Origin: Ylistrum balloti
Taxonomy: Eukaryota
Length of the DNA stretch: 64,000 bases
Direction of reading: 5' to 3'
Assembly (NCBI RefSeq): GCF_031769215.1
Contig: NW_026781915.1
Span: 496,001 to 560,000 of the forward strand
This document shows positions 41,060 to 58,116 of this stretch, in pieces (the first letter of the stretch is position 1; each line of letters starts with the position of its first letter). The position numbers were made by a program, and so were the translations under genes. The notes beneath the pieces were generated by a model. It made no database searches, was not told the DNA's origin, and saw nothing but the letters and a program-made list of their open reading frames with translations.

Positions 41060-41115
41060 GGAAAACCCACGTAAGAAACCATATAATACCAAGTGACAAT
41101 ATTTCAAGACAGTTT
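41060..41115 (+). promoter_or_regulatory. Putative core promoter of cytokine-like gene A
   Basis: GGAAAACCC (kappaB-like) at 41060-41068, overlapping CCACGTAAG (bZIP-like), TATAAT at 41082-41087 and a CAGTT initiator-like sequence at about 41110. The ATG is at 41163. Confidence 0.4.
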
Positions 41116-41162: not shown

Positions 41163-43122
41163 ATGATGTGTTTATTGTACTTAGGTAAACTTCAACACCT
41201 TTTGATTTGCACTAATTTCTCACAATAACGCGCCTGAAAACGATATGCGAGAATATCGTTGAAAGAATGTCTTGTAAGAATCCTTGAGTAGACTGAGGGT
41301 GTAGCAAATCCGATTTATAGTTTTCCTGAAACTGGTATTACATCCGTTTTGAAAAGCATCCATAAAACCATTGTCTTAAATAATCTTAAATATTGTATTA
41401 AAAGAAACACTGTGAGAAATGAAGAACGAAATAGTTTTAACAAATTATTTTCTATTCTGTGCAATATAGGGACAGTTCGGTAATATATTCTTATATACAA
41501 TGTATAGACATACCAGATAAAAACAAATCATAAAATGAATTTGTTTCAAAGGTTTGTTATTGGCCCAAACGTTCGGCGTTTTGGCCGACTGTCCAGGATT
41601 GCACCACGACACACCCACGTCTGAAATAATGGGAATATGTGGACAACTGGATGTTTGTACTGCGAGAGACCCCAATCACAGTTCTTCTCAGGTATTCGAC
41701 AGAAACATAGCTCTGAGACTTTGGAGGAAAGCTAAACGGATGGACAGAGCGTTTGACGACCTGGTAAGTTGTAGAGTATCGAATACATAACGACTAATCA
41801 TTGTTTCCCTTTGGCCTGTTGCTGCTTGTTTTCAATATTCGTTACTCTGTGAAGAACAAGCTTTGTAATGAACGGGTTAGGCTTAAGCATTGTGTTGGTT
41901 ATGCAGAATGATAAAATTTATTTGGAAGTTCTGCATTCTTAATAGCAATCTCATCGAGATTTTATTGAAGCGATATGGATCTGAACGAGTTTGATGCTCA
42001 TTATTTTGCGTGTTGGGTCAGTGTATACGTTGTTCTCATTTGAGAACATAACATTACCAGTACTATGTCACAAGCTATCTATCTGAGCCAGTACGATCAT
42101 CTCATATTTTTTTCATGGATACAAATGGATTTGTCAAATGTTATACTTTGCTAGTATGGCCGATGTAGTCCTAGCATCATACCATCTCCGACTGAGGAAT
42201 GTCGCTCATGTATGGAAACACTCCTCCCTCATAATCTACCTTATGAGAACGTCACGGCAAAAGAAGTAAGTATATGAATTGATCAAAGAAGAAAAGTCTT
42301 GGCATACACACACATTTGTTTTTGTAATTTACTTTCTTCAGTAAATCCGTTGACATTATCACAAGAGTTTTAGAATGGAGATTTAAAAAAAAGTCAAATA
42401 GTTAGATGTTTCATGTTTGTGTGTTTTTATATAGTTTCACGTTATCTGAATGTATATAGTCTAACAACGGCGAGTAAATATTATTCAAAGCTGAAAATCT
42501 CTTAAATGAAACATTTGCAACGTTTAGTATCGCACAGAAACGTTTTTGAAAAATACAGCATTTTTTACTGAAATAAACCATTTTCAGAGTGACCTATTCA
42601 CTTTACGTTATCATGCAGTCTTTGAAAAGAGAGAACCATGGCTCTTTCAAAGCTCCGATTTCAACTAGGTATCTGTAAGAGTGTAAATTAAATACAAAAT
42701 AGCCAGCGGAGGGACAATGCAAACAGTTTTAAAATAATCATAATGTGTATATATATATTTTGTTTCAGATGAGGGATAGTTTATTAACAGATTATACAGT
42801 ATTAGGAAAGGTCGTGGGAGCCCTCACGCGCATGCACGAAGGTTGTTCGCGATATCTGTATGTCCACCATCATATCACTAGGGCTGAAATTGCGACGAAA
42901 CAGCTCATGTGTGAGATCGGTGTGTCCCTTCCAAGTGTCGGGGGTGATCAACCCTGTGGCCCTCTGTATCCTTTACTGACCTCATGGTGTCATACAAACA
43001 ACTGTTTTGATTGGTATGATCGCAACTTTCTAGTTATGGACAAGCTCATCGATACCTCACAAGCCGTGAAGAGCAAGTATACCCATTTATTGTCAAGCCA
43101 CGTGATATACGATGCGAAATAA
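41163..43122 (+). CDS. Secreted 232-aa protein, candidate long-chain four-helix cytokine (Unpaired/IL-6-like), paralog A
   Basis: Exons 41163-41184, 41552-41763, 42155-42265 and 42769-43122 (intron phases 1,0,0; GT-AG) total 699 nt with no internal stop. The signal peptide is MMCLLYLGLLLAQTFGVLA. Amphipathic segments: RNIALRLWRKAKRMDRAFDDL, SLLTDYTVLGKVVGAL, EIATKQLMCEIGVSL, DRNFLVMDKLIDTSQAVKSKY. Exon 1 is the least certain element. Confidence 0.75.
41945..42057 (+). mobile_element. Penelope-like 3' fragment in intron 2 of cytokine-like gene A
   Basis: Aligns by eye with 45477-45601; shared blocks include atctcat.gaga, tttgatgctc.tta.tttgc.tg.tgggt and tcatttgagaac..acattac. Confidence 0.7.
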
Positions 43123-43469
43123 GGTCGCAGGTATTTCAGCTGTACACGAATGAGGAGCAAACAGTTTCGATGTGTCGTTTCAACATGTAATGCTTGTTCT
43201 GTACATTAACTTATAAGGATTACTTTATACAAGGAATAATGACATGTCAAAACAATTGCATCTAGGCCAATTGTTTTGGTGAAATCTTATTTGCTTTCTA
43301 TTTTTCGACTTAGGTTCCTAAAGCATACTACCTCCAGCACTTGGTCGAATTAATGCCATCGTTGTATTAAACTTACACACTTTGCTATGATTATGTATTT
43401 TATACCATATTGAAGTTTATGTATCAATATATACGTGTTTTTTTATCACAAATACTTATCTTATATGTT

Positions 43470-44335
43470 GAATTGATATCGTCACTGGGCGGTATCTTTT
43501 TCTGTATCCTTTATTTCCACTGGATAACGTTTATTTTTTTTATTGAATGATACCTTTTTACGTGTTACTATTTTCATTGGATGCTAACTTGTCACGTATT
43601 ATAATTGCCATGATAACTGTTTACGTTTTATTATTTTCACTGGATGATAACCTTTTACGTATCTTTCATTGGATGATAACTGTTTACGTTTTATTATTTT
43701 CACTGGATGATAACCTTTTACGTATCTTTCATTGGATGATAACTGTTTACGTTTTATTATTTTCACTGGATGATAACTTTTTACGTATCTTTCATTGGAT
43801 GATAACTGTTTACGTTTTATTATTTTCACTGGATGATAACTTTTTACGTATCTTTCATTGGGATAACTGTTTACGTTTTATTATTTTCACTGGATGATAA
43901 CTTTTTACGTATCTTTCATTGATGATAACTGTTTACGTTTTATTATTTTCACTGGATGATAACTTTTTACGTATCTTTCATTGGATGATAACTGTTTACG
44001 TTTTATTATTTTCACTGGATGATAACTTTTTACGTATCTTTCATTGGATGATAACTGTTTACGTTTTATTATTTTCACTGGATGATAACTTTTTACGTAT
44101 CTTTCATTGGATGATAACTGTTTACGTTTTATTATTTTCACTGGATGATAACTTTTTACGTATCTTTCATTGGATGATAACTGTTTACGTTTTATTATTT
44201 TCACTGGATGATAACCTTTTACGTATCTTTCATTGGATGATAACTGTTTACGTTTTATTATTTTCACTGGATGATGACCTTTTACGTTTTATTATTTTCA
44301 TTGGATGATACCTTGCCACGTATTATTATTTTTTC
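43470..44335 (+). repeat. 63-bp dimeric (34+29 bp) higher-order minisatellite just 3' of gene A
   Basis: tggatgataactgtttacgttttattattttcac alternates with tggatgataactttttacgtatctttcat; this produces the 21-aa periodic ORFs. Confidence 0.95.
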
Positions 44336-44729
44336 ATATACGGATCCTTTTGTCAGTTTCTATTTTACCTCATTTTTCGTGGACAATATCGGCCTATTAT
44401 AGCATGTCTTTTTGATATAATAAATGTAATTATAAAGCAAATGTGTTTGACTCTAAGTACTAGATGAATAACACTACTTTGAGTATCAAATGATTTGATT
44501 TGATTTTTCAAATGTTTTGTTGACAAAGACATCGTTGTATAGGAACAATCACGAAGGACATGTCCCAACAAAGGAGGGCTGTCATTTAACAGACATCAAC
44601 CACACTGTCATCATCCACATTGTCATTAATTCTTTCAATAACATAAATACATGTATCTACACATAAACATACATTATATTGGCTATAACAATTTACAAAA
44701 CTTTTAATTAATTTATTCAATGAAATTTT

Positions 44730-45700
44730 CAAATGTATCCTCATCACCAAATCTTTTTTCTATACTACTAACCACCATTCCAATTACTATCAAAACTGGG
44801 TTACACTCTTCTTGTGATACTGTTTACTCAAGAAATGGAGTTAATAGTGTGTGGATTTTGAAGAATTCCAGAGAACTTTTGACCAATCTTTAACACCCTC
44901 TTCTAAAAACATTTCTTCTATAATAACATTTTATATTTACACACTGTACACAACCTTACCCCATTCTAAACGGAAGAGGCGCCTTCGTTCTCTTGTTATG
45001 AGAGCTTGCTTCTCCAAGAAAGGTGAACGGCGGTATAAATATGTAGCTGTGAACTATACAGAAGCGTATTTCGTAAAACTTACGTCAAAATCAAAGAAGT
45101 AATATACGGAGGACAAAATAATCATTGAGTTTTTTGTTGACAACGTCTTCGTCGAGTTTGGTGGAAAGACTTTGAAAATCCTTTAATTCCACCTTCAGAT
45201 ATATTGATGACGTCTTGTCTTAAAATTATAAGAAAATTTATTGACTGCGTCCATCGTATATATCCATCAGAAATGGAAGTCAAAGATACGACAGACTCTT
45301 CTACGGCAGCTGCTTATCTCGATCGTTTTCCTACAACGAAGCCAACATGGACAGTTGTACGATAAACGTGATGATTTAAATTTCCCTATTGTGAATTTTC
45401 CATTTCTGGTTCCTAACACAAGAGTTCAAAAGATGCAGGCCGGTGAAATTTATGGGAAAGTTTTATGGTCGCCATAGTGATCTCATTGAGAAATATTCTG
45501 TTTCTTTGTGGGATATGAAGCTGGACGTATTTGATGCTCGTTAATTTGCCTGCTGGGTACGTTGTTGTATATCTTGTTTTCATTTGAGAACGTGACATTA
45601 CTTACTGGGATTGACCACGGTTTACATAGCGGATGTCGTCGATGAAGCAGAAAACGCTTACTCTTCCGAAACACCTGGTCTTATTCTCCGTGTTAATATT
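44730..45700 (+). mobile_element. Decayed Penelope-like retroelement (bivalve-type RT)
   Basis: Frameshifted motifs: GLHSSCDTVYSRNGVNSVWILKNSRELL, TLYTTLPHSK, GERRYKY, DNVFVEFGGK, KDTTDS..AAYLD, LYDKRDDLNFPIVNFPFL and GKFYGRHSDLIEKYSVS. The tail acgcttactcttccgaaacacctggtc is typical of this family. Confidence 0.85.
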
Positions 45701-48311
45701 TCTTTTGTTAATATTAGGCCCTAGTTTTATGGAATTTGAGTTTGAAGTATGATGATGTTGCCATGTTGGTATTTTCTGGATGCTTTTTTTTCAACAGAAT
45801 CTAGAAGTATCTTGAAATTCACATTCCAATTAACAGACGGGATTTCACGATATCTAGGACCCTTCATGAAAAGCTCTCGTACTTAACATTTTGAATAATG
45901 GTTAAATCACAAGTTACCATGTGCCCAGTTAGACCATAGTTACAAGTAGATGTAGATCAAGAACAAGGTGACGGAGGACAAGTTCTTATGTTATCTACAT
46001 TCAGTTGGATGCCTTGAGTAACTATAGCAAATTACAGGTTTTTTTTCTGCTTTGAAAGTATGGCGGTATTTAGCCTGAACAGACTTCTGGTATAAAATAT
46101 TGCTGATGTTTATTATTATTATTTTCATACTTGTTTATACTGAAATACATTATGCAAATTGATAATAGTTATAAAAATAAAGACAAAATATAAATAAATC
46201 TTTATATAAAAATGAATGAACACACAAAAGTAACATTCCGGAGCAATTCTTCGGATTGGCAATGTCATTTGAATAGAAGTTCTTAAACGACAGGAAGTAG
46301 AATTCATATTCACATACTATATACCCTAACATGATATATGGATAATTCAAATATAGCTTTCCCGTTAGGGTATATATCAGCGTCATTATTGGACAACAAA
46401 TGCTCTATTCTAATATGACGATGCTATGATTTACGTGTTGGTTTTAACTCGATATAACAAAAGGTCTAACGTTTTAAAGCAATGTTATTATCACATATAT
46501 TCTTCTCATATAATAATTGTATTGTAACAAAAAAGAAAAATACTACCGAAAAAGTACATATCATGTATCATATCAAGTTTTTAAAATTAATTATTTAATT
46601 TTAATTGTGCTTTATTGGAATATTACTTGTGAATAATTTTTTCCAAAACTAAAGTATCTGGAGATTGAGCCTTGCTGACGTTCTACATATCACATCTTAT
46701 TCTAATTAAGAATGACACCTGCACATAATATGCATTTACATGAATATTTATTTTAACATTTGATTCCAATGATCTGCATCCATATGGATTCTTAACTTCA
46801 CTGAGGATTTCTAGTAGAACAAAATGTTGCATTTTGAGGTGATTTCCCTTTTTATTTAGTTGTATTTGCTATTTTTAACCCTCAAGACTACTATGTTGAC
46901 ATGCTGTTCGATGTTTGCGTTTACTCACACAAATCAATAATTACAACAAAAACACAAAGAATGTAATCTTGTTTAAAATTATAAGCAGATGAAAACAAAT
47001 ACTAGTCATATGGCATTTTAGGACCCAATCAATTGATCACGTACTTGTCAAGATACAAGAATCTTTTTTCTAATTTTATTGAATGTCGTTTTGTTCAGTA
47101 GAGCTGTTTCTCTGTCTTTCTATACTGATATGACCTAGACCGTCAGACAGATGTCAAACAACAACATACCTGAATAATATACAGAAGAACATGTACATAA
47201 ACTGTGTAAAGGATCTCTTATTTTTGTTGTATTTATTACAGCTTTCACCCTTGCTTTAGATTGATAGCAAAACTAAGACAATTAAAACCTTCATTTTGAT
47301 GGTGAGGAAGCAATTACAAATATTTCCGATTGAAAAAAGAAACAGGGGGGAAGTGCCAATTCTATAAAAGTAAGGACTTACCTCTTTGTGAAAAGAAAAG
47401 AAAACAAGAAACTTTCCACGATAACTTCAGTAACATTTTTGTATCATAGGTTTGGTATACACATAAATTACCAGTGATATTTCGGAGTACAACATTATTC
47501 AAATTGTCATTGGTCAGAAACGCTGATCAATTCAGTCCCACTTGAAAGCAGGAAAAAATGTCAAAGGGTGACATTGACCCTGGAGTATAAACCTGTGACT
47601 CATTAGTTCACTCATTGTTACAAATACCTATTGGGATTATGGTAAAGTACAACTACTACAATCGCGTGACAATTATTCACAAGTTGAATACAAAGCCATA
47701 AAGCAAACAGTCACAGTATTGGTTTCATGGGTAAAGAAAGAGGTATTTAACTTTCTTTAGGGTAGTTTCTATTGCTATACAAATTACTGAGTGCATAGCA
47801 ATTACTTCTTCGATTCCATTGGCATCTAAAGGAAAATGGCTTGTAACAAAATAGAAAGGCGTGTTATTATTCGTGGGATTAGAGATGACTAGTTCTACTG
47901 GGAATAACCACAGGGTTTCCAATTTTAGGAAAGTTTTCCCCAGTTTTCTTTATAAAAGCATTGCGTTCTGAAGAATCAGATACATTAGTAAGTACAGTGT
48001 AGTGATCTAGAACATGACAACATTTAGTCGTAAGTAACCTAGTTATCCCATTGCAATGTATCATTTCATTATCAGCCAGTGTGATAAATATTTGTACCAG
48101 CTTGACATTAGAAACTTATATATTTTTAATCATCTCTAGCTTTTCCGATGATAATATAACTCACGCATTTGTGACCAATTATAGCGGTGCTCTCTATAGT
48201 CACTGAGTCAGGTTTTCTTGTTAGGACACAGCTGAAGAGAAGATTGAATGCGTTGGTTTTCAATCAAGTTATTTGTCTGTGTTCTCTAATTTAGTGTGTA
48301 AAATAATTATG

Positions 48312-48358
48312 TATAAATATTTCGTACCAGGTAACAGTACTAAAAGATAAAGGATCAG
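48312..48358 (+). promoter_or_regulatory. Putative TATA box and short non-coding first exon of cytokine-like gene B
   Basis: TATAAATA at 48312 is followed by a strong donor CAG|gtaagg at 48358. An acceptor tatag| at 48875 lies 7 nt before the ATG. Confidence 0.4.
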
Positions 48359-48882
48359 GTAAGGCATTTAATTCAAATTGGCGACATCATGTTGTCACTT
48401 GGAACGTCAAATCATCTTATGTTTTTCATTTTGAAAAGAAACAGGAAGAAAAGTGTTGGTGTTAAGTATCATATACAATACTATTAGTGCGCCAAATACT
48501 TTCAAATAGAGGACACGCTTTTAAGGAACAAATGACAAATTGTGGGTTTCATACTTCAGTCCTAAAGAGTGTTTTACATCAGAGTAAGAAAAAATACAGA
48601 CTAGGTTTGGCATTTATCTGCTAAATCATGGTAACATCTTTATCACTCTTCTTCATTTAACAGAGTTTTAGGTTTTGTCTTGTTATTCATAATAAGCCTT
48701 TGTAATGTGTAACCACAATATACATATGACTTACTGTGGTTCCTAGGATTATTGATGGATGGTTTGATGTAGAGTTTTAGTTCAATATTGTAAAATTTAC
48801 GGAATCTAGAAATATTTCGACGATCAAGTGTTGTGACTTTTTTTTTATCGAAGATTCCTGTAAACTATCGTATAGAAAAAAT

Positions 48883-51352
48883 ATGCATATCATACAGGTA
48901 TGTTCCATCTTCACAGTATGGTTGGCTTGCCTGTGCGTGGCGTCATATTTGCTGCCGTCGATGGGAGAACTTTCTCCTGCGTTTTCCGATCTTAACATTG
49001 GCACCAAGAACATTTGTGGAGAAAATGTCCCTCCTCAGTATCCAGCCGACATCGATTTCCCATTCCATGAGGTCGTTATCCCGCCATCATTCAGACGGAA
49101 CATCCATCGTCTAGAGAGGAAGGCACTCCAGCTGAAGCACAGTGTGACGAGCTTGCTTCGTCTATATGTAAGTTTATTGTGAAAAGCATCATATTTGGTT
49201 TGGTTTTCTATGAGATCAAAATACATTTAAATGAAACATAATAATAACAATTATATGATTGTGAACAGCAAGATGACCGTATTTGACGTGAATAAAACAA
49301 TTTTGGTGCTATTTTAAGGAAGCTGAATTTATCTTAGTTCTTCCAGATGTAGATTTTTTATTTCATCCTCTGCGTATCTGCCTTTCCCTAGTTTTCCCTT
49401 GTATTTTTCATTGCCATTAACTTTCAAACAATTGAATTTTGACCGTTTTGTAAACTTTCCTCGCCTAGATAGTTTACTGTTTTTTCTCGGTTAGTATCAA
49501 TCCTACCGAATGATTAAAATCGTGAGTAATCACCACTCTCTGATATTACAGGAGGAAGACAGACTATCCAGATCTGCTGATATCGATGAGATAACATACT
49601 TTCCACCGTGTTTTCAACTCATCAACAGAACCAGTTTTGTTGTGATGTCGGAGTTGTCTCCCTTCACGGTAAGTGTAAACTGAATATTTCATTTGTACAT
49701 ATTTTGGCATTGTTTCATCTATTTTAAGTTCGAATGAAAATTTTATTCACATGTTGGCATTTTTGTATTTATATAAATACTTATTAAATGGGTTTGATAA
49801 GGACTTGAATATTCACGGGACAATAACAGATCTAACAATGGTTTATTGAAACACACGCAGTCTAACCAGATTTTATATAGTATACACAGGGAATCTAACA
49901 AGGTTTTATATAATATACCCAGAAAAACTAACAAGGTTTGATATACCCTGAGAATCTAATAAGGTTTTATATACCCTGGGAATCTAATAAGGATTAATAT
50001 ACCCTGATAATCTAATAAGGTTTTATATACCCTGATAATCTAATAAGGTTTTATATACCCTGATAATCTAATAAGGTTTTATATACTCTGATAATCTAAT
50101 AAGGTTTTGTATACCCTGATAATCTAATAAGGTTTTGTGTACCCTGATAATCTAATAAGGTTTTGTATACCCTGATAATCTAATAAGGTTTTATATACCC
50201 TGATAATCTAATAAGGATTTATATACCCTGGGAATCTAATAAGGTTTTATATACCTTGGGAATCTAATAAGGTTTTGTATACCCTGATAATCTAATAAGG
50301 TTTTATATACTCTGGGAATCTAATAAGGATTCATATCCCCTGAGAATCTAATAAGGATTCATAACGTCTAATCAAGATTTATATACTCTGGGAATCTGAT
50401 AAGGGTTTACATAATCGCACTGTTACTTTCTTTAATTAGATAAGTGACAGTGTCATTTTTCACAAAGGGCCGAGGAAGCATATATCCTGGGGAACTGGGA
50501 AAGTAGACAAGGTTTCTAAAAAGGGTTTTAAAATTATCCAGGAACGCTACGCGGGGTTTATATATTCGGGGAAAATTATGTAATTAATAAAATTCAATTT
50601 CTCTTACTTTTATTTTATTATTTCTATATAAATGTATTTCAAAATAAAAAACATAACAAAATGGCAGAAATCAGATATATGTAGTAGCATCCCAAAACAT
50701 TATTTTTTTATATTTATTGGAAAATTTAAATGTTTTAATGAAAATCAAAATTTTCGATAAACTTAATTCTAGCAAAGGTACTTTTCCTCACACCGCTGAC
50801 TTCAATTTTGTCAAGTTTTAGTAACACTTTTTTCTTTCAGTTCATGAACTTGATGTTTTTAAGGAAAACACTCGCCATACAAGTTTATTTTTCTGCTTAA
50901 CTAATGAGTCGTCTTGAACGGAAGAGAAAATTTCACTCTCGTTTCTTGAGGTTTTAATAGGATTTTAACATCTTTCTGTTATATACGCCTTTGTGTTACA
51001 GATATATCGATCACTGAAACGGGACTTTCATACTATGACAGACTTCCTTGGTATGTTGGAACTTATGAAAGAGGACGAAGCAACTTTCGAAAATTCCGAG
51101 TTAATTCTGAACTTTCTTCAGATAGAAATCAACACAAAGAGTCTTCTCTGTGAACTTTCTTTCTCCATTTCTGCCCTAGAAAGTTCCGTCCCCTCCACAG
51201 TGGTTAGGCTTCGTCTAGACAAATGGTGCGTTGCTGAGGGAGCAGACGACTGTTGGCGCTGTAACAGAGATTCCATGATACTGAGTATGATTGATAAGCT
51301 GTGTTTTACACTTCGAGATAAATACAGACACATCAGGAGAAACATATTCTAG
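48883..51352 (+). CDS. Secreted 250-aa protein, candidate long-chain four-helix cytokine, paralog B
   Basis: Exons 48883-49167, 49552-49668 and 51002-51352 (both introns phase 0; donors gtaagt) total 753 nt. The signal peptide is MHIIQVCSIFTVWLACLCVA. It shares with paralog A the motifs ICG, RNI..RL.RKA, SL..D, EI.TK.L.CE, WC, R...L.M and KY.H. Confidence 0.78.
49860..50415 (+). repeat. 28-bp minisatellite in the last intron of gene B
   Basis: About 18 copies of ataccctgataatctaataaggttttat. Confidence 0.95.
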
Positions 51353-52575: not shown

Positions 52576-55500
52576 ATGGCGGAGGAACTCGAAGACTCGG
52601 ATATGGAACAGTTAACGCTGGTGGGTTTCTTTTAAAATCACTATCAATTATCATTACATGTCAGCCAAGAAATGTAAGGAAATTGTTTAGAAACAATTCA
52701 AAAACATTTGAAAATATGTGGCACAAGCAGTATGTATCAGACTACGCCTAAACAAGTGAACGGGATGCTGCGTCCACCAGCGTCAATGCTATACTGCGCA
52801 GTTGAAGCGAGGAACGACGAAGAACGATCACGTGTGCTCTTTGTTATTGTTTACATTTTATATATAGGTTATTTCTGTAAAGCACGTGCTGACTTCTGCG
52901 TACCTCACTCGTGATTTTTTTTGCTCCGTTTCATCACCAACATGTATGATTACGGCACGCTGAGTCAAGTATTAAACATCTTGACGATTTTTAGGTTTGA
53001 TCGAAGGTAACATCTACAAGAATATGTAAATGAATATAATCCCGACCAAAATAATTCACCCTTCAAATTAATAGTTAGTGGACGGGCCATAGTCCGTTTC
53101 ATTTATTTTTGGATATTCAAACAAAAATTCACTATGCATTCAGCATTGGTTTCTGACCGGTATATCGGGCCATCGTTTGGAATGACCGTGTAAGACCACG
53201 GGTGGACATTCGCTCGAGATTTTATCTTCAGTCTCGGTATCTTGTTTCAGAAAGCAACAGTGTAAACTGTAAAATCCTAGCCAGTAACACTAAACCTTTG
53301 ATGTTAGCTTCTATTACTCCGCGAACCGGCCGGGGATGAACAGTATGATCCTCGTGATGATAACATGAATGAACAGTATCTATTTGATCTCTCGGGTGAT
53401 CCACATTATATTAAAATGAGTGATACCATTCTATTACTGTAAACACTGTAGATTGTTTCGTGAAAACACCAGTGAGATAATATGATGTTAAATATCGGTG
53501 ATATAACCATTGTAATTCAGATAGAAGTAAGATCAGTGCAGACGTTGCAATCAATTAGACCTGAGAATCTGTTGAAGTCTAAGTGGAGATGGGCCTGTCC
53601 TGGTCTGTATCACAGGGGCCTGGGAATATGTTACAGTCTAAGTGGAGATGGGCCTGTCCTGGTCTGTATCACAGGGGCCTGGGAATATGTTACAGTCTAA
53701 GTGGAGATGGGCCTGTCCTGGTCTGTATCACAGGGGCCTTGGAATATGTTACAGTCTAAGTGGAGATGGGCCTGTCCTGGTCTGTATCACAGGGGCCTTG
53801 GAATATGTTACAGTCTAAGTGATGATGGACCTGTTCTGGTCTGTATCACAGGGGCCTGGAAATATGTTACTGTCTAAGTAAAGATGGGCCTGTCCTGGTT
53901 GGTTTGTATCACAGGGGCCTGGGAATCTGTTACAGTCGATCACAATAACCAGAGAATCTGTCACAGTTTAAGTGAAGATAGACTTGTCTTGATATTTATG
54001 ACAAGGATCTGATTATCCACTACACTCCAAGTGAAGCTGGGCTTATACATCACAAAGTAGGGCCACTTGTACTGAATGTCACTCTAAAATTTCTTTCTCT
54101 CACAACATTCTTATAACGAACCACTCTATTCGGCTAGACAGTCAGACAACAGATTACCAGCTACTACAAAAAAAGTCAATCTTAAATCTGAAGAGGTCCG
54201 AATCTTTCCAAAACATGCAGGAAATAAAAACTAATGACATTTTCGTCGTTTACCAACAAGTAGGAAAGCAAATTCAGGAACTTTCAGCAAACGGCTGTAT
54301 ATCTTCGTTCGTAAGTTGCTGAGCAATATGGCTGGTTGCCAAAGACGCATATTCCGGACATAAACACGGATGTATGGTAATGTGGGTTGAATATGAAAAA
54401 GAGGTCGAAGTGGTGTCCCCAAATCAAAGCCGGCACCATATGTATCTCCGAAACAAGTGACGTTTTGTTTACAAATAACTTTACAGAACGCGAAAAAGTG
54501 AAGTGCGCGCGGGTATGCATTCATTGTATATAAACTTGTACACGGGCACGTACAGACCAGTGTATGTAGACTGCTGTAGTAGACGGTAGTAGATAGATAC
54601 AGGCATGCTGTCTTCAGATCTGTACCATGTGAGTACTATACTCAATCCATTTTTGTTTTTTTTTTATTTATATAATTTTTTTTAAAATTTTTGCTTTTTC
54701 AAAAAAGAGTTTTCAAAACGATATTATGTTTGTTAGATGTGTCAGATATATAATTCACAAAATCTTCGATTTAACAGTGATCGTACAGTGTATTACGGAA
54801 TCTATTGCGTTATACATACATGTTCGACACGTTCATAAGCATCAGTAGAACTCGGATTTCTTGTTCTCTCCTTCATCAACTACTGAAATCCGTTAACAAT
54901 GCAAACGGTAAAGGTTTACCCATATAGTAACTAACCTTCACTTCTAGCAAAACAGTAACTAACCATGACCTCTACCAGTACAGTACTTAACCCTCAGTTC
55001 TACCAGTACAGTAACTAACCTTCACATCTACTAGTACAGTAACTAACCCTCACTTCTACCAGTACAGTAACTAACCCTCACTTCTACCAGTACAGTAACT
55101 AACCCTCACTTCTGCCAGTACAGAAACTAACCTTCACTTCTACCAGTACAGTAACTAACCCTCACTTCTACCAGTACAGTAACTAACCCTCACTTCTACC
55201 AGTACAGTAACTAACCCTCACTTCTACCAGTACAGTAACTAACCTTCACTTCTACCAGTACAGTAACTAACCTTCACTTCTACCAGTACAGTAACTAACC
55301 CTCACTTCTACCAGTACAGTAACTAACCCTCACTTCTACCAGTACAGTAACTAACCTTCACTTCTACCGGTACAGTAACTAACCCTCACTTCTACCAGTA
55401 CAGTAACTAACCATGACCTCTACCAGTACAGTAACTAACCCTCACTTCTGCCAGTACAGTAACTAACCTTCACTTCTACCGGTACAGTAACTAACCCTCA

Positions 55501-58116
55501 CTTCTACCAGTACAGTACTTAACCCTCAGTTCTACCAGTTCAGTACTTAACCCCCAGTTCCACCAGTTCAGTAACTAACCCTAATTTATATCAGTACAGT
55601 AACTAACCCTCACTTCTACCAGTACAGTACCTAACCCTCACTTCTACCAGTACAGTAACTAACCCTCACTTCTACCAGTACAGTAACTAACCTTCACTTC
55701 TACAAGTACTGTAACTAACCTTCACTTCTACCAGTACAGTAACTAACCCTCACTTCTACCAGTACAGTAACTAACCTTCACTTCTGCCAGTACAGTAACT
55801 AACCTTCACTTCTACCAGTACAGTAACTAACTCTCACTTCTACCAGTACAGCACTTAACCCTCAGTTCCACCAGTTCAGTAACTAACCCTAATTTTTATA
55901 AGTACAGTAACTAACCCTCACTTCTACCAGTACAGTACCTAACCCTTACTTCTACCAGTCCAGTAACTACCCTTACTTCTACCAGTACACCAACTAACCC
56001 TAATTTTATCAGTACAGTAACTAACCTTCACTTCTACAAGTACTGTAACTAACCTTCACTTCTACCAGTACAGTAACTAACCTTCACTTCTACCAGTACA
56101 GTAACTAACCCTCACTTCTACAGGAATTCACTTTCGCTACTATATGGACAGACACTCGTACTCTCTTACACCTTCATAACATTTACCCTCATAGTAACTC
56201 ACGCTCACTTTCCCTCACTTGTTACTGTCATCACTCCTCCCCATTGTAACTTAACATCGCTGCTTCCTTAACGTAACTCACCCCCATTTCTTCCCCATTG
56301 TAACTAACCGTACCGTCATTCATCCTTACTTCTACCAGTACAGTAATTCACACACATACATTTCTATCCTCTATTCAACTCACCAGTATGTTTACCAATT
56401 CATTTACTCACTATTAGTCCTACCAGCACAGTATACCGTCGTCTTTTCCATTTTATCAGTAACTTATCATATCTCCATCATGTTCCTCCAGCACGAAAAT
56501 TAGTCATGATCTTGGCGTCAAGAATAACAATCCGTAAAGAAAGGACCCCGTCTGATAAAAACATGCATTTGACACGGTACCTGGCCCCTAGGTGTACACC
56601 GAGATATGTTTCGGTCAAGACGTCTGTAGCATGGCTACAAGTATTATAAAAGGCATTTGATTTGTATTATTTCCAATTTCGTCTTCTAAGAATGAAGTTA
56701 TTTAATTTCAACCTCATATACTTTCAGTATCTCCGACTTTTTGGCTTCGACAAGAATAGAGAACCGGAACTAGAGGAAGTGGAAGATGAATACGGCTGGG
56801 CTCACCTACCTGACATTCTGCTGGAGGACATCTTCGCTATGTTGACCCCCAAAGCCCGCCATCAGGCGTCGCGTGTGTGTAAATCATGGTACAAGACATT
56901 TTACTCTCCGCGCGTCTGGGAGACATTTCTTTTCGAAGAAGGAACTCTCACGAGACGACGATATAACTTGTTCAAAGGATTCACTCGTGAGTTGTGTCCA
57001 AGAAAGGCACAAAACTGTCTCAATAGTGTCGGGACGCTTTTTAAAAAGATCATTATTTGTCCGATCAGTGACTTTTATAATCTTCTTTTCTTGGGTGTCC
57101 TCAGCTCATTTCTCTCGTTCTTTGAAGAATTTCCTATTCCCCTGCTGCACACTTTCCAGTTTACGTTTGCTTGCGAAAGTCGCGGTATCAATGGAAACAT
57201 GGTGTTCGGAACCGGCGGGCAAATCCTCCAAGAACTCAACACACTGATAGCCTGTATCAAGAACCTCAAAACCTTGAGTATCAATCAACTTTTGCTTGCG
57301 GAGGAGGACGTACCTGGCTTGTTTGAGGCCGCTCTTAAATACAATACCGAATCTATTCGCTTTCTTGAGATCATCAACTGTGCAAAAGCTGACACTCCAA
57401 TTCCACAATTGGCAAGATTCGATTGTCTTCAGCGTCTCACTGTGAGTAATCAGCACGTTGATGACGAGGTAGCGATCCTATTGGCGGGAACAGGGCTCTC
57501 TGACCTTCGTCTTGTTCAGGATAAGTACACGTGCGCCACAGAGCCTGTTTCAGCAGACGCCTGGCGTATCATCAAAGATATGGCACCGTTCCTTAAGGTC
57601 ACGCTAGAAATTCGTGGAAAGTGTAAAAACTCACTGTTGCTTCAGCCACATGCACCTGTGACTAGTATCGTTTACGACACGCCCTACTACAAAATTTCGC
57701 ATGCAGATGCAATGGACTTTGTCCACTTCTACAGTAAAACTCTTGAACTGTTTATCCAGAAAGGAATCCCGCGTGTCCATGGCCCCAGATCATTCCACGA
57801 AAGAGGAGATTCTTCTTTTGTAATGATGGTGAAAAATTGTCCGAAGCTCAAAACCCTCATCATCAATGAACGCATATCAACGGCAACTGTTCTCTTGCTC
57901 TCGCACGAGGGAAGGTCATTGGAGACGTTCCTCGTACGGGCAAACGCCATTATCAAGCGGTCGGACTGGCCACGCGATCGAGACTGGTCTGAGGAATTTT
58001 ACATGAAATTAAGAACTAATGCACGCTGTTATAATCGGATGGAAAACGAAGTTGCGCAGAAACACGATTGGAAATGGCGGCCTTTGACGGACAGGGAGTT
58101 TAAAAATATGATGTAA
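52576..58116 (+). CDS. F-box/LRR-type protein (FBXO39/FBXO33/FBXL3-like group)
   Basis: The large exon 56728-58116 follows the acceptor ctttcag| and starts with an F-box (WAHLPDILLEDIFAML...ASRVCKSW..F.SP.VW), followed by LRR-like segments (LKTLSINQL, LQRLTVS, CPKLKTLII). Two phase-0 first-exon candidates are 52576-52620 (MAEELEDSDMEQLTL) and 54215-54310. Confidence 0.88.
53530..54060 (+). repeat. 59-bp minisatellite in F-box gene intron
   Basis: aagtggagatgggcctgtcctggtctgtatcacaggggcctgggaatatgttacagtct at 53581, 53640, 53699 and 53758, with degenerate flanking copies. Confidence 0.95.
54935..56125 (+). repeat. 28-bp minisatellite (about 40 copies) in F-box gene intron
   Basis: Unit agtacagtaactaaccctcacttctacc; period 28 (for example 55145 and 55173). 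Confidence 0.97.

Follow-up and report, generated by a model that had tools for sequence, protein, structure and literature searches.

Molluscs possess an IL6R-like receptor, JAK and STAT, with no IL-6-type ligand known; a 2026 survey placed the IL-6 family cytokines in vertebrates alone and suggested that 'alternative ligands' may serve the mollusc module (PMC13203501). Our search of the literature likewise found no report of an IL-6-type ligand in molluscs. Two neighbouring genes of the saucer scallop Ylistrum balloti, here called A and B, raise the question of whether such ligands are encoded in a mollusc genome, and whether their intron phases, described in an earlier sequence-only reading as the signature of vertebrate helical cytokines, are a trace of common descent. 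The window that we analysed is a stretch of 64,000 nucleotides (RefSeq assembly GCF_031769215.1, contig NW_026781915.1, positions 496,001 to 560,000) within contig JAUZWB010000590.1, to which the RefSeq protein P0018 (LOC132561093) maps at 100% identity; positions are those of the window unless another locus is named, and a slash marks a splice junction or a cleavage site.

The sequence-only reading had proposed that gene A opens with a 22-nt coding exon (MMCLLYL-G/gtaaac) and is interrupted in phase 1 and then twice in phase 0, and our analysis reproduced this model exactly (Table 1). The joined coding sequence of 699 nt encodes 232 amino acids, with its sole stop at the end and intron phases of 1, 0 and 0. 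From the ATG at 41163, the first exon (ATGATGTGTTTATTGTACTTAG) runs to 41184, with GTAAAC next to it; the acceptor of intron 1 reads ..tttcaaag/GT at 41551/41552, and exons 2 and 3 close in the phase-0 donors CTG/gtaagt and GAA/gtaagt, the 3' end of exon 2 being used by P0018 as well. The leader, MMCLLYLGLLLAQTFGVLA/DCPG, was judged by eye to be a signal peptide: its core is hydrophobic, the residues at -3 and -1 are small, and its FGVLA is conserved in three species. Exon 4 carries the family-conserved motifs D[YF]xxL..G.L..M, LMC, WC, RD/RN and KY, and an RD[YF]-type motif lies in helix D of the family. In a three-way alignment, the TATA-like motif ahead of gene A is matched at the Pecten and Argopecten loci by a conserved CYATAATA, ~80 nt upstream. 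Separately, the 36 nt at 42022-42057, within intron 2, form the end of a very high-copy repeat, at which many contigs of the DNA run end and the summed contig depth reaches ~3900, against ~10 in the flanks.

Table 1 Features of genes A and B in the window
Feature	Positions	Strand	Description
Gene A TATA-like motif	41079..41089	+	CCATATAATAC; ~75-85 nt upstream of the start codon; putative promoter element
Gene A coding exon 1	41163..41184	+	22 nt; MMCLLYL and first base of a Gly codon; donor TAG/GTAAAC
Gene A intron 1	41185..41551	+	367 nt; phase 1; in signal peptide at codon 8
Gene A exon 2	41552..41763	+	212 nt; leader remainder, Cys-rich N-terminal stretch, helix A; cleavage after FGVLA
Gene A intron 2	41764..42154	+	Phase 0; ~4 residues ahead of the C-terminal end of helix A
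Gene A exon 3	42155..42265	+	111 nt; AB loop with short helix and conserved N-glycosylation sequon (NVT)
Gene A intron 3	42266..42768	+	Phase 0; ~3 residues inside helix B
Gene A exon 4	42769..43122	+	354 nt including stop; helices B, C and D
Gene B coding exon 1	48014..48029	+	16 nt; ATGACAACATTTAGTC/GTAAGT; phase 1; aligns with Pecten and Argopecten B first exons
Gene B intron 1	48030..48916	+	887 nt; phase 1; signal peptide codon 6
Gene B exon 2	48917..49167	+	Remaining leader and helix A; phase-0 end
Gene B exon 3	49552..49668	+	117 nt; AB loop; phase-0 end
Gene B exon 4	51002..51352	+	Helices B-D and stop codon

Given that the only public run containing DNA of the window (X1) is genomic, with contigs collinear with the introns, and gives no splice junction, we made the test of the 22-nt exon a comparative one. 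Gene A of Argopecten irradians has a counterpart of 22 nt (L002 9368-9389; MLVIFYL-G, ATGCTTGTTATATTTTACCTAG/GTAAGT) and that of Pecten maximus one of 25 nt (L001 9084-9108; MALFIFYI-G, ATGGCGTTGTTTATATTTTACATAG/GTAAGC), both upstream of the RefSeq starts. The ATG, the hydrophobic codons, the donor GT and the phase are kept in all three genera, the difference in length being an in-frame 3 nt. Furthermore, the codon split by intron 1 encodes glycine in each scallop (GGT, GGA and GGG), the place of the acceptor in exon 2 is identical, and exons 1 and 2 together measure 234, 264 and 240 nt in Ylistrum, Argopecten and Pecten, respectively, all multiples of three. The junctions between exons 2 and 3 and between exons 3 and 4 are identical in the RefSeq models of the three species. 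An out-of-frame ATG at 41535, which the sequence-only reading had named as a start that would contradict its model, proved to be intronic, and neither Pecten nor Argopecten has an equivalent.

Exon 2 opens in the middle of the hydrophobic core of the signal peptide (LLLAQTFGVLA/DCPG), leading into the conserved FGVLA site, with no in-frame ATG before MGICGQ and with an in-frame stop just upstream of its only acceptor. Such an opening is difficult to reconcile with a gene in which the 22-nt exon goes unused and translation starts at an internal methionine, as in RefSeq, or in some other upstream exon. That alternative draws on several observations: the RefSeq models of all three species begin at internal methionines; the one run that matches the window is genomic and shows no read across 41184/41552; the donor of exon 1 is weak (TAG/GTAAAC scores 1.3 in a crude matrix) and further ATG..GT candidates lie upstream of it; and a transcript contig of Argopecten gene B has a different, unplaced 5' leader. 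Nevertheless, the features of the mini-exon are conserved in three genera while the sequence of the flanking intron 1 has no alignment across them, and RefSeq itself models the analogous mini-exon of gene B in Pecten and Argopecten. We consider a wrong 5' end to be distinctly unlikely. Whichever upstream exon is chosen, intron 1 is in phase 1, because its acceptor and the reading frame fix it. Judged from these conserved sequences, gene A is a real gene with four coding exons, including the 22-nt first exon. Across its 117 codons, exon 4 is gap-free in the three scallop species, 55-63% identical and with a dN/dS of 0.10-0.23; gene A is therefore constrained by purifying selection but fast-evolving.

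The RefSeq annotation presents the two genes as one. LOC132561093 (P0018, 345 aa) is a chimera of A and B that spans 41629-51352: it enters gene A at an internal methionine, leaves it through a cryptic donor inside exon 4 (42841/42842) and is joined to the gene B acceptor at 48916/48917, and it contains neither true N-terminus. In Pecten (P0003) and Argopecten (P0012), too, the RefSeq gene A models lack their 5' part, and the mini-exon is missed in all three species. These mis-models, comprising one A-B fusion and three truncated N-termini, help to explain why sequence surveys have overlooked the genes.

Gene B has the same intron phases as gene A, 1-0-0, and encodes a protein of 244 aa with the spliced N-terminus MTTFSLWLACLCVASYLLPSMG/ELSP; over the last exon, the two are 22% identical (E 2e-8). 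The start of gene B had earlier been placed at 48883, with the leader in a single exon, and this we replace by the 16-nt phase-1 first exon, whose homologues read ATGGTTATATTCCGCG/GTAAGT in Pecten and ATGAAAATATTCCATG/GTAAGT in Argopecten; a TATA-like motif upstream of the exon is conserved in an alignment of the 5' regions with these two species. The open reading frame from 48883 had also been considered as an in-frame read-through of an 18-nt relic of intron 1, an idea that was dropped once the alignment with Pecten and Argopecten had revealed the true 16-nt exon and the promoter motif. The claim that gene B has phase-0 introns at the two positions equivalent to those of gene A was borne out, with orthologous junctions in a spliced Argopecten irradians transcript contig (L006, from Logan SRR23580857). 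This contig confirms introns 2 and 3 of gene B, together with the intron-1 acceptor, which is equivalent to the one that P0018 uses. The 18.8 kb ahead of B in the Argopecten locus L002 contain no match to the first 29 nt of the contig, which place an out-of-frame ATG before the reading frame and could derive either from an alternative leader exon far upstream or from a chimeric assembly. Since these 29 nt are unplaced, the contig provides no evidence on the junction between exons 1 and 2.

The gene order GKAP (minus strand), A and B is conserved in the Pecten maximus and Argopecten irradians loci. Three tandem arrays are interspersed in the window: a 63-nt unit repeated 12 times between A and B (43538-44287), which generates long spurious open reading frames on both strands; a 28-nt unit repeated 16 times (49913-50363), assigned to gene B intron 2; and a 59-nt unit repeated 6.3 times further downstream (53560-53937). 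The next downstream gene, at ~52576-58116, encodes an F-box protein of 477 aa according to the RefSeq call in L007, and the G+C-rich, strongly C-skewed stretch at 54-58 kb falls within it.

To place the family, a profile of the last exons of A and B, covering the C-terminal 120 residues only, was searched against 1.84 billion protein representatives. It returned 11 matches, every named one from a mollusc and annotated as 'uncharacterized', and no annelid, arthropod or vertebrate protein was among the 11; this search was also the source of the Pecten maximus and Argopecten irradians orthologues compared above. Within the family, the AB-loop exon ranges from 99 to 117 nt and the last exon from 330 to 375 nt. 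The sequence-only reading had called for a comparison with other mollusc loci, and this shows the architecture to be common to the orthologues in three scallop genera. Gigantopelta, a gastropod, and a third scallop paralogue also have the two phase-0 introns, and a Mytilus member has the intron ahead of helix B. The Gigantopelta gene model has no leader intron, and a profile of the helix-A exon recovered nothing convincing as an upstream exon in the Mytilus locus L005; the leader intron has therefore not been traced outside the scallops.

The third scallop paralogue, C, lies on another chromosome and has the same two phase-0 introns (Argopecten L004 10001-12565, P0007; Mizuhopecten P0020). No signal peptide can be recognised at its RefSeq N-terminus (MVIIQVSCHGNSC...), so that either its first exon is missing from the model or this member is leaderless. 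In Gigantopelta aegis, a second copy of the family last exon (L003 3198-3596), with 87% amino acid identity to P0009, is situated ~7 kb upstream of the annotated gene; from this pair of sequences, the family is evidently duplicated in tandem in the gastropod too.

Sequence comparison with the known cytokine families was negative throughout. No Pfam cytokine family matched the exons or any of eight family proteins even at E-values up to 10, and the family profile found no cytokine among all PDB sequences, only chance matches to vinculin. A regular-expression search for the IL-6 PROSITE-type signature, C-x9-C-x6-G-L-x2-[FY]-x3-L, found it in no family member, and the FxxK motif of LIF and CNTF was likewise absent from the family members. 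The profile search of 1.84 billion representatives with the C-terminal 120 residues detected no similarity to Upd and no arthropod match.

We then turned to the predicted folds, for which the RefSeq orthologues P0012 (gene A) and P0001 (gene B), modelled on shallow alignments of 16-19 rows, stand in for the window's own spliced proteins. The AlphaFold model of P0012 (pLDDT 82.5, pTM 0.79) has helices at 22-46, 77-101, 109-136 and 158-188; its AB loop has 30 residues and contains a short helix, its BC turn has 7 residues and its CD loop 21. The model of P0001 (pLDDT 72, pTM 0.71) has the same arrangement. Both show four long helices in an up-up-down-down order, in which a short turn joins B to C, and long crossover loops join A to B and C to D. 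In a Foldseek search with weak E-values, the best 50 matches were all helical cytokines. The proteins of A and B are accordingly predicted to adopt a long-chain four-helix bundle shaped like IL-6, IL-11, CNTF and LIF, with helices A and B running up and C and D running down.

An AlphaFold artefact would account for this likeness if four amphipathic helices had been packed, from a shallow alignment, into the commonest template-like arrangement; we regard this as very improbable. The intron plan is evidence independent of both sequence similarity and AlphaFold. The 1-0-0 plan matches the one typical of the first three introns of the IL-6, IL-11, G-CSF, GH/PRL and EPO genes. Human IL-6 has coding exons of 19, 191, 114, 147 and 168 nt, and its introns fall at codon 7 (phase 1), at LRKE/TCNK near the end of helix A and at FNE/ETCLV where helix B begins (both phase 0). 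GH is interrupted in phase 1 after 10 nt and has boundaries at 31/32 and 71/72, to be compared with helices at 9-34 and 72-92; in both IL-6 and GH, introns 2 and 3 mark the close of helix A and the opening of helix B. No cytokine subclass other than long-chain class I is known to combine a leader intron in phase 1 with phase-0 introns after it.

In the scallop models, intron 2 falls at 42/43 in P0012 and at 88/89 in P0001, four residues short of where helix A ends, and intron 3 at 79/80 and 127/128, respectively, three residues into helix B; the equivalence of these positions with those of the vertebrate genes holds within about one helical turn only. When set against the four-intron long-chain plan, both A and B have the first three introns and lack the fourth, after helix C. 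Of the vertebrate-type plan recognised by the sequence-only reading, the scallop genes thus show the phase-1 leader intron and two phase-0 introns, one close to where helix A ends and one close to where helix B begins; the fourth intron is absent, and the gastropod model has no leader intron.

Published gene structures provide points of reference. IL-6 genes have one leader intron and three introns in the IL-6 domain, with conserved phases, although single genes have lost the leader intron (PMC13081863); in IL-11, 7 bp separate the start codon from the first intron (PMC3271213); exon 3 of GH begins at residue 32 (PMC6114276); and class II cytokine genes have the phases 0-0-0-0 (bioRxiv 10.64898/2026.05.30.728932; PMC4929537). 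A published statement of the phases 1-0-0-0 was not found in our literature search. Phase 1 is the commonest phase in genes for secreted proteins, with a peak near the cleavage site at ~codon 20, and phase 0 is the commonest overall, while codons 3-20 are described as intron-poor (PMC1626468). Because of this paucity of introns at codons 3-20 (PMC1626468), a leader intron at codons 6-9 is less generic than the earlier reading had implied. Phases alone are weak evidence; the strength comes from phase, position in the fold and fold class together. The intron plan and the fold ranking indicate the same subclass independently.

Taken together, these results lead us to the following model. Gene A would encode a secreted, glycosylated and Cys-rich long-chain four-helix-bundle cytokine of 232 aa, from a gene in which a 22-nt exon and a phase-1 leader intron come first, one phase-0 intron lies near the close of helix A and another where helix B begins, and a last exon covers helices B-D. 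The shared architecture would reflect common descent from an old long-chain cytokine gene, and the protein would act as an extracellular ligand that pairs class I receptor chains (mollusc gp130/Domeless/IL6R-like) and switches on JAK-STAT.

Common descent with the vertebrate long-chain cytokines is plausible, and as the best explanation of the data we lean, by a modest degree, towards A and B being IL-6-shaped cytokine genes homologous with them. The competing explanation is a mollusc-specific family of secreted four-helix proteins, in which the fold would be convergent or would serve another role (hormone, carrier, shell or reproductive protein) and the 1-0-0 order would be a coincidence of general biases. 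The taxonomic range fits such a family, all named members being molluscs with no sequence link to vertebrate or insect cytokines, as do the general prevalence of phase 1 in secreted-protein genes and of phase 0 overall, the gastropod model without a leader intron, and the 3' flank of gene A, in which no AU-rich ATTTA motif occurs. It is harder to accommodate that the fold ranking, the leader intron at codons 6-9 and the pair of phase-0 introns that flank the AB loop, where helix A ends and helix B begins, all fit a single cytokine subclass, and that up-up-down-down bundles with two long crossover loops are, to our knowledge, rare outside the cytokines and hormones of the long-chain class. We judge the mollusc-specific explanation rather unlikely.

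Homology with the vertebrate cytokines, towards which we lean, had been proposed by the sequence-only reading from gene architecture, which it took to point to a bilaterian-ancestral gene. The architectural part of that argument stands, in that the plan is real, is shared by the paralogues and by three genera, and accompanies a predicted fold of long-chain class I; the bilaterian ancestry is less well served, as every named profile match is a mollusc. That A, B and their mollusc relatives descend from a bilaterian ancestor of the IL-6/CNTF/GH-type cytokines, keep its gene plan and act as ligands of gp130/Domeless-like receptors is possible, and we put it forward tentatively. If true, a ligand-receptor-JAK-STAT axis and its gene architecture would be older than the protostome-deuterostome split. 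The scallop A/B family offers concrete candidate ligands for the mollusc JAK-STAT receptor, which can be expressed and tested.

A comparison with known systems delineates where the scallop genes would stand. The members of the IL-6/gp130 family (IL-6, IL-11, CNTF, CLCF1, LIF, OSM, IL-27p28 and IL-23p19) have five coding exons, whereas the scallop genes have four and no intron after helix C; their cysteine pattern also differs from that of the scallop family, which is marked by a conserved helix-C cysteine and by a WC within the CD loop, and sequence similarity between the two groups is undetectable. Growth hormone, prolactin and placental lactogen are vertebrate pituitary hormones with disulfides unlike those of the scallop family and without sequence similarity to it, and GH has an extra intron after helix 3. 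An argument of the same type was made for the IL-6 of lamprey and hagfish, identified from structure, synteny and exon-intron plan (PMC13081863), which resembles the scallop case in its extreme divergence, its four-helix model and its conserved intron plan with a leader intron. Unlike the scallop genes, which are known from sequence and models and have no synteny link to vertebrates, the lamprey and hagfish genes have preserved the vertebrate synteny (TOMM7) along with all three domain introns, and have been functionally tested (PMC13081863). The Unpaired proteins of Drosophila (Upd1-3), ligands of Domeless, are the only accepted helical JAK-STAT ligands of invertebrates (PMC13203501). They are secreted glycoproteins without sequence similarity to the vertebrate cytokines, and they occupy the same functional slot that we propose for the scallop family.
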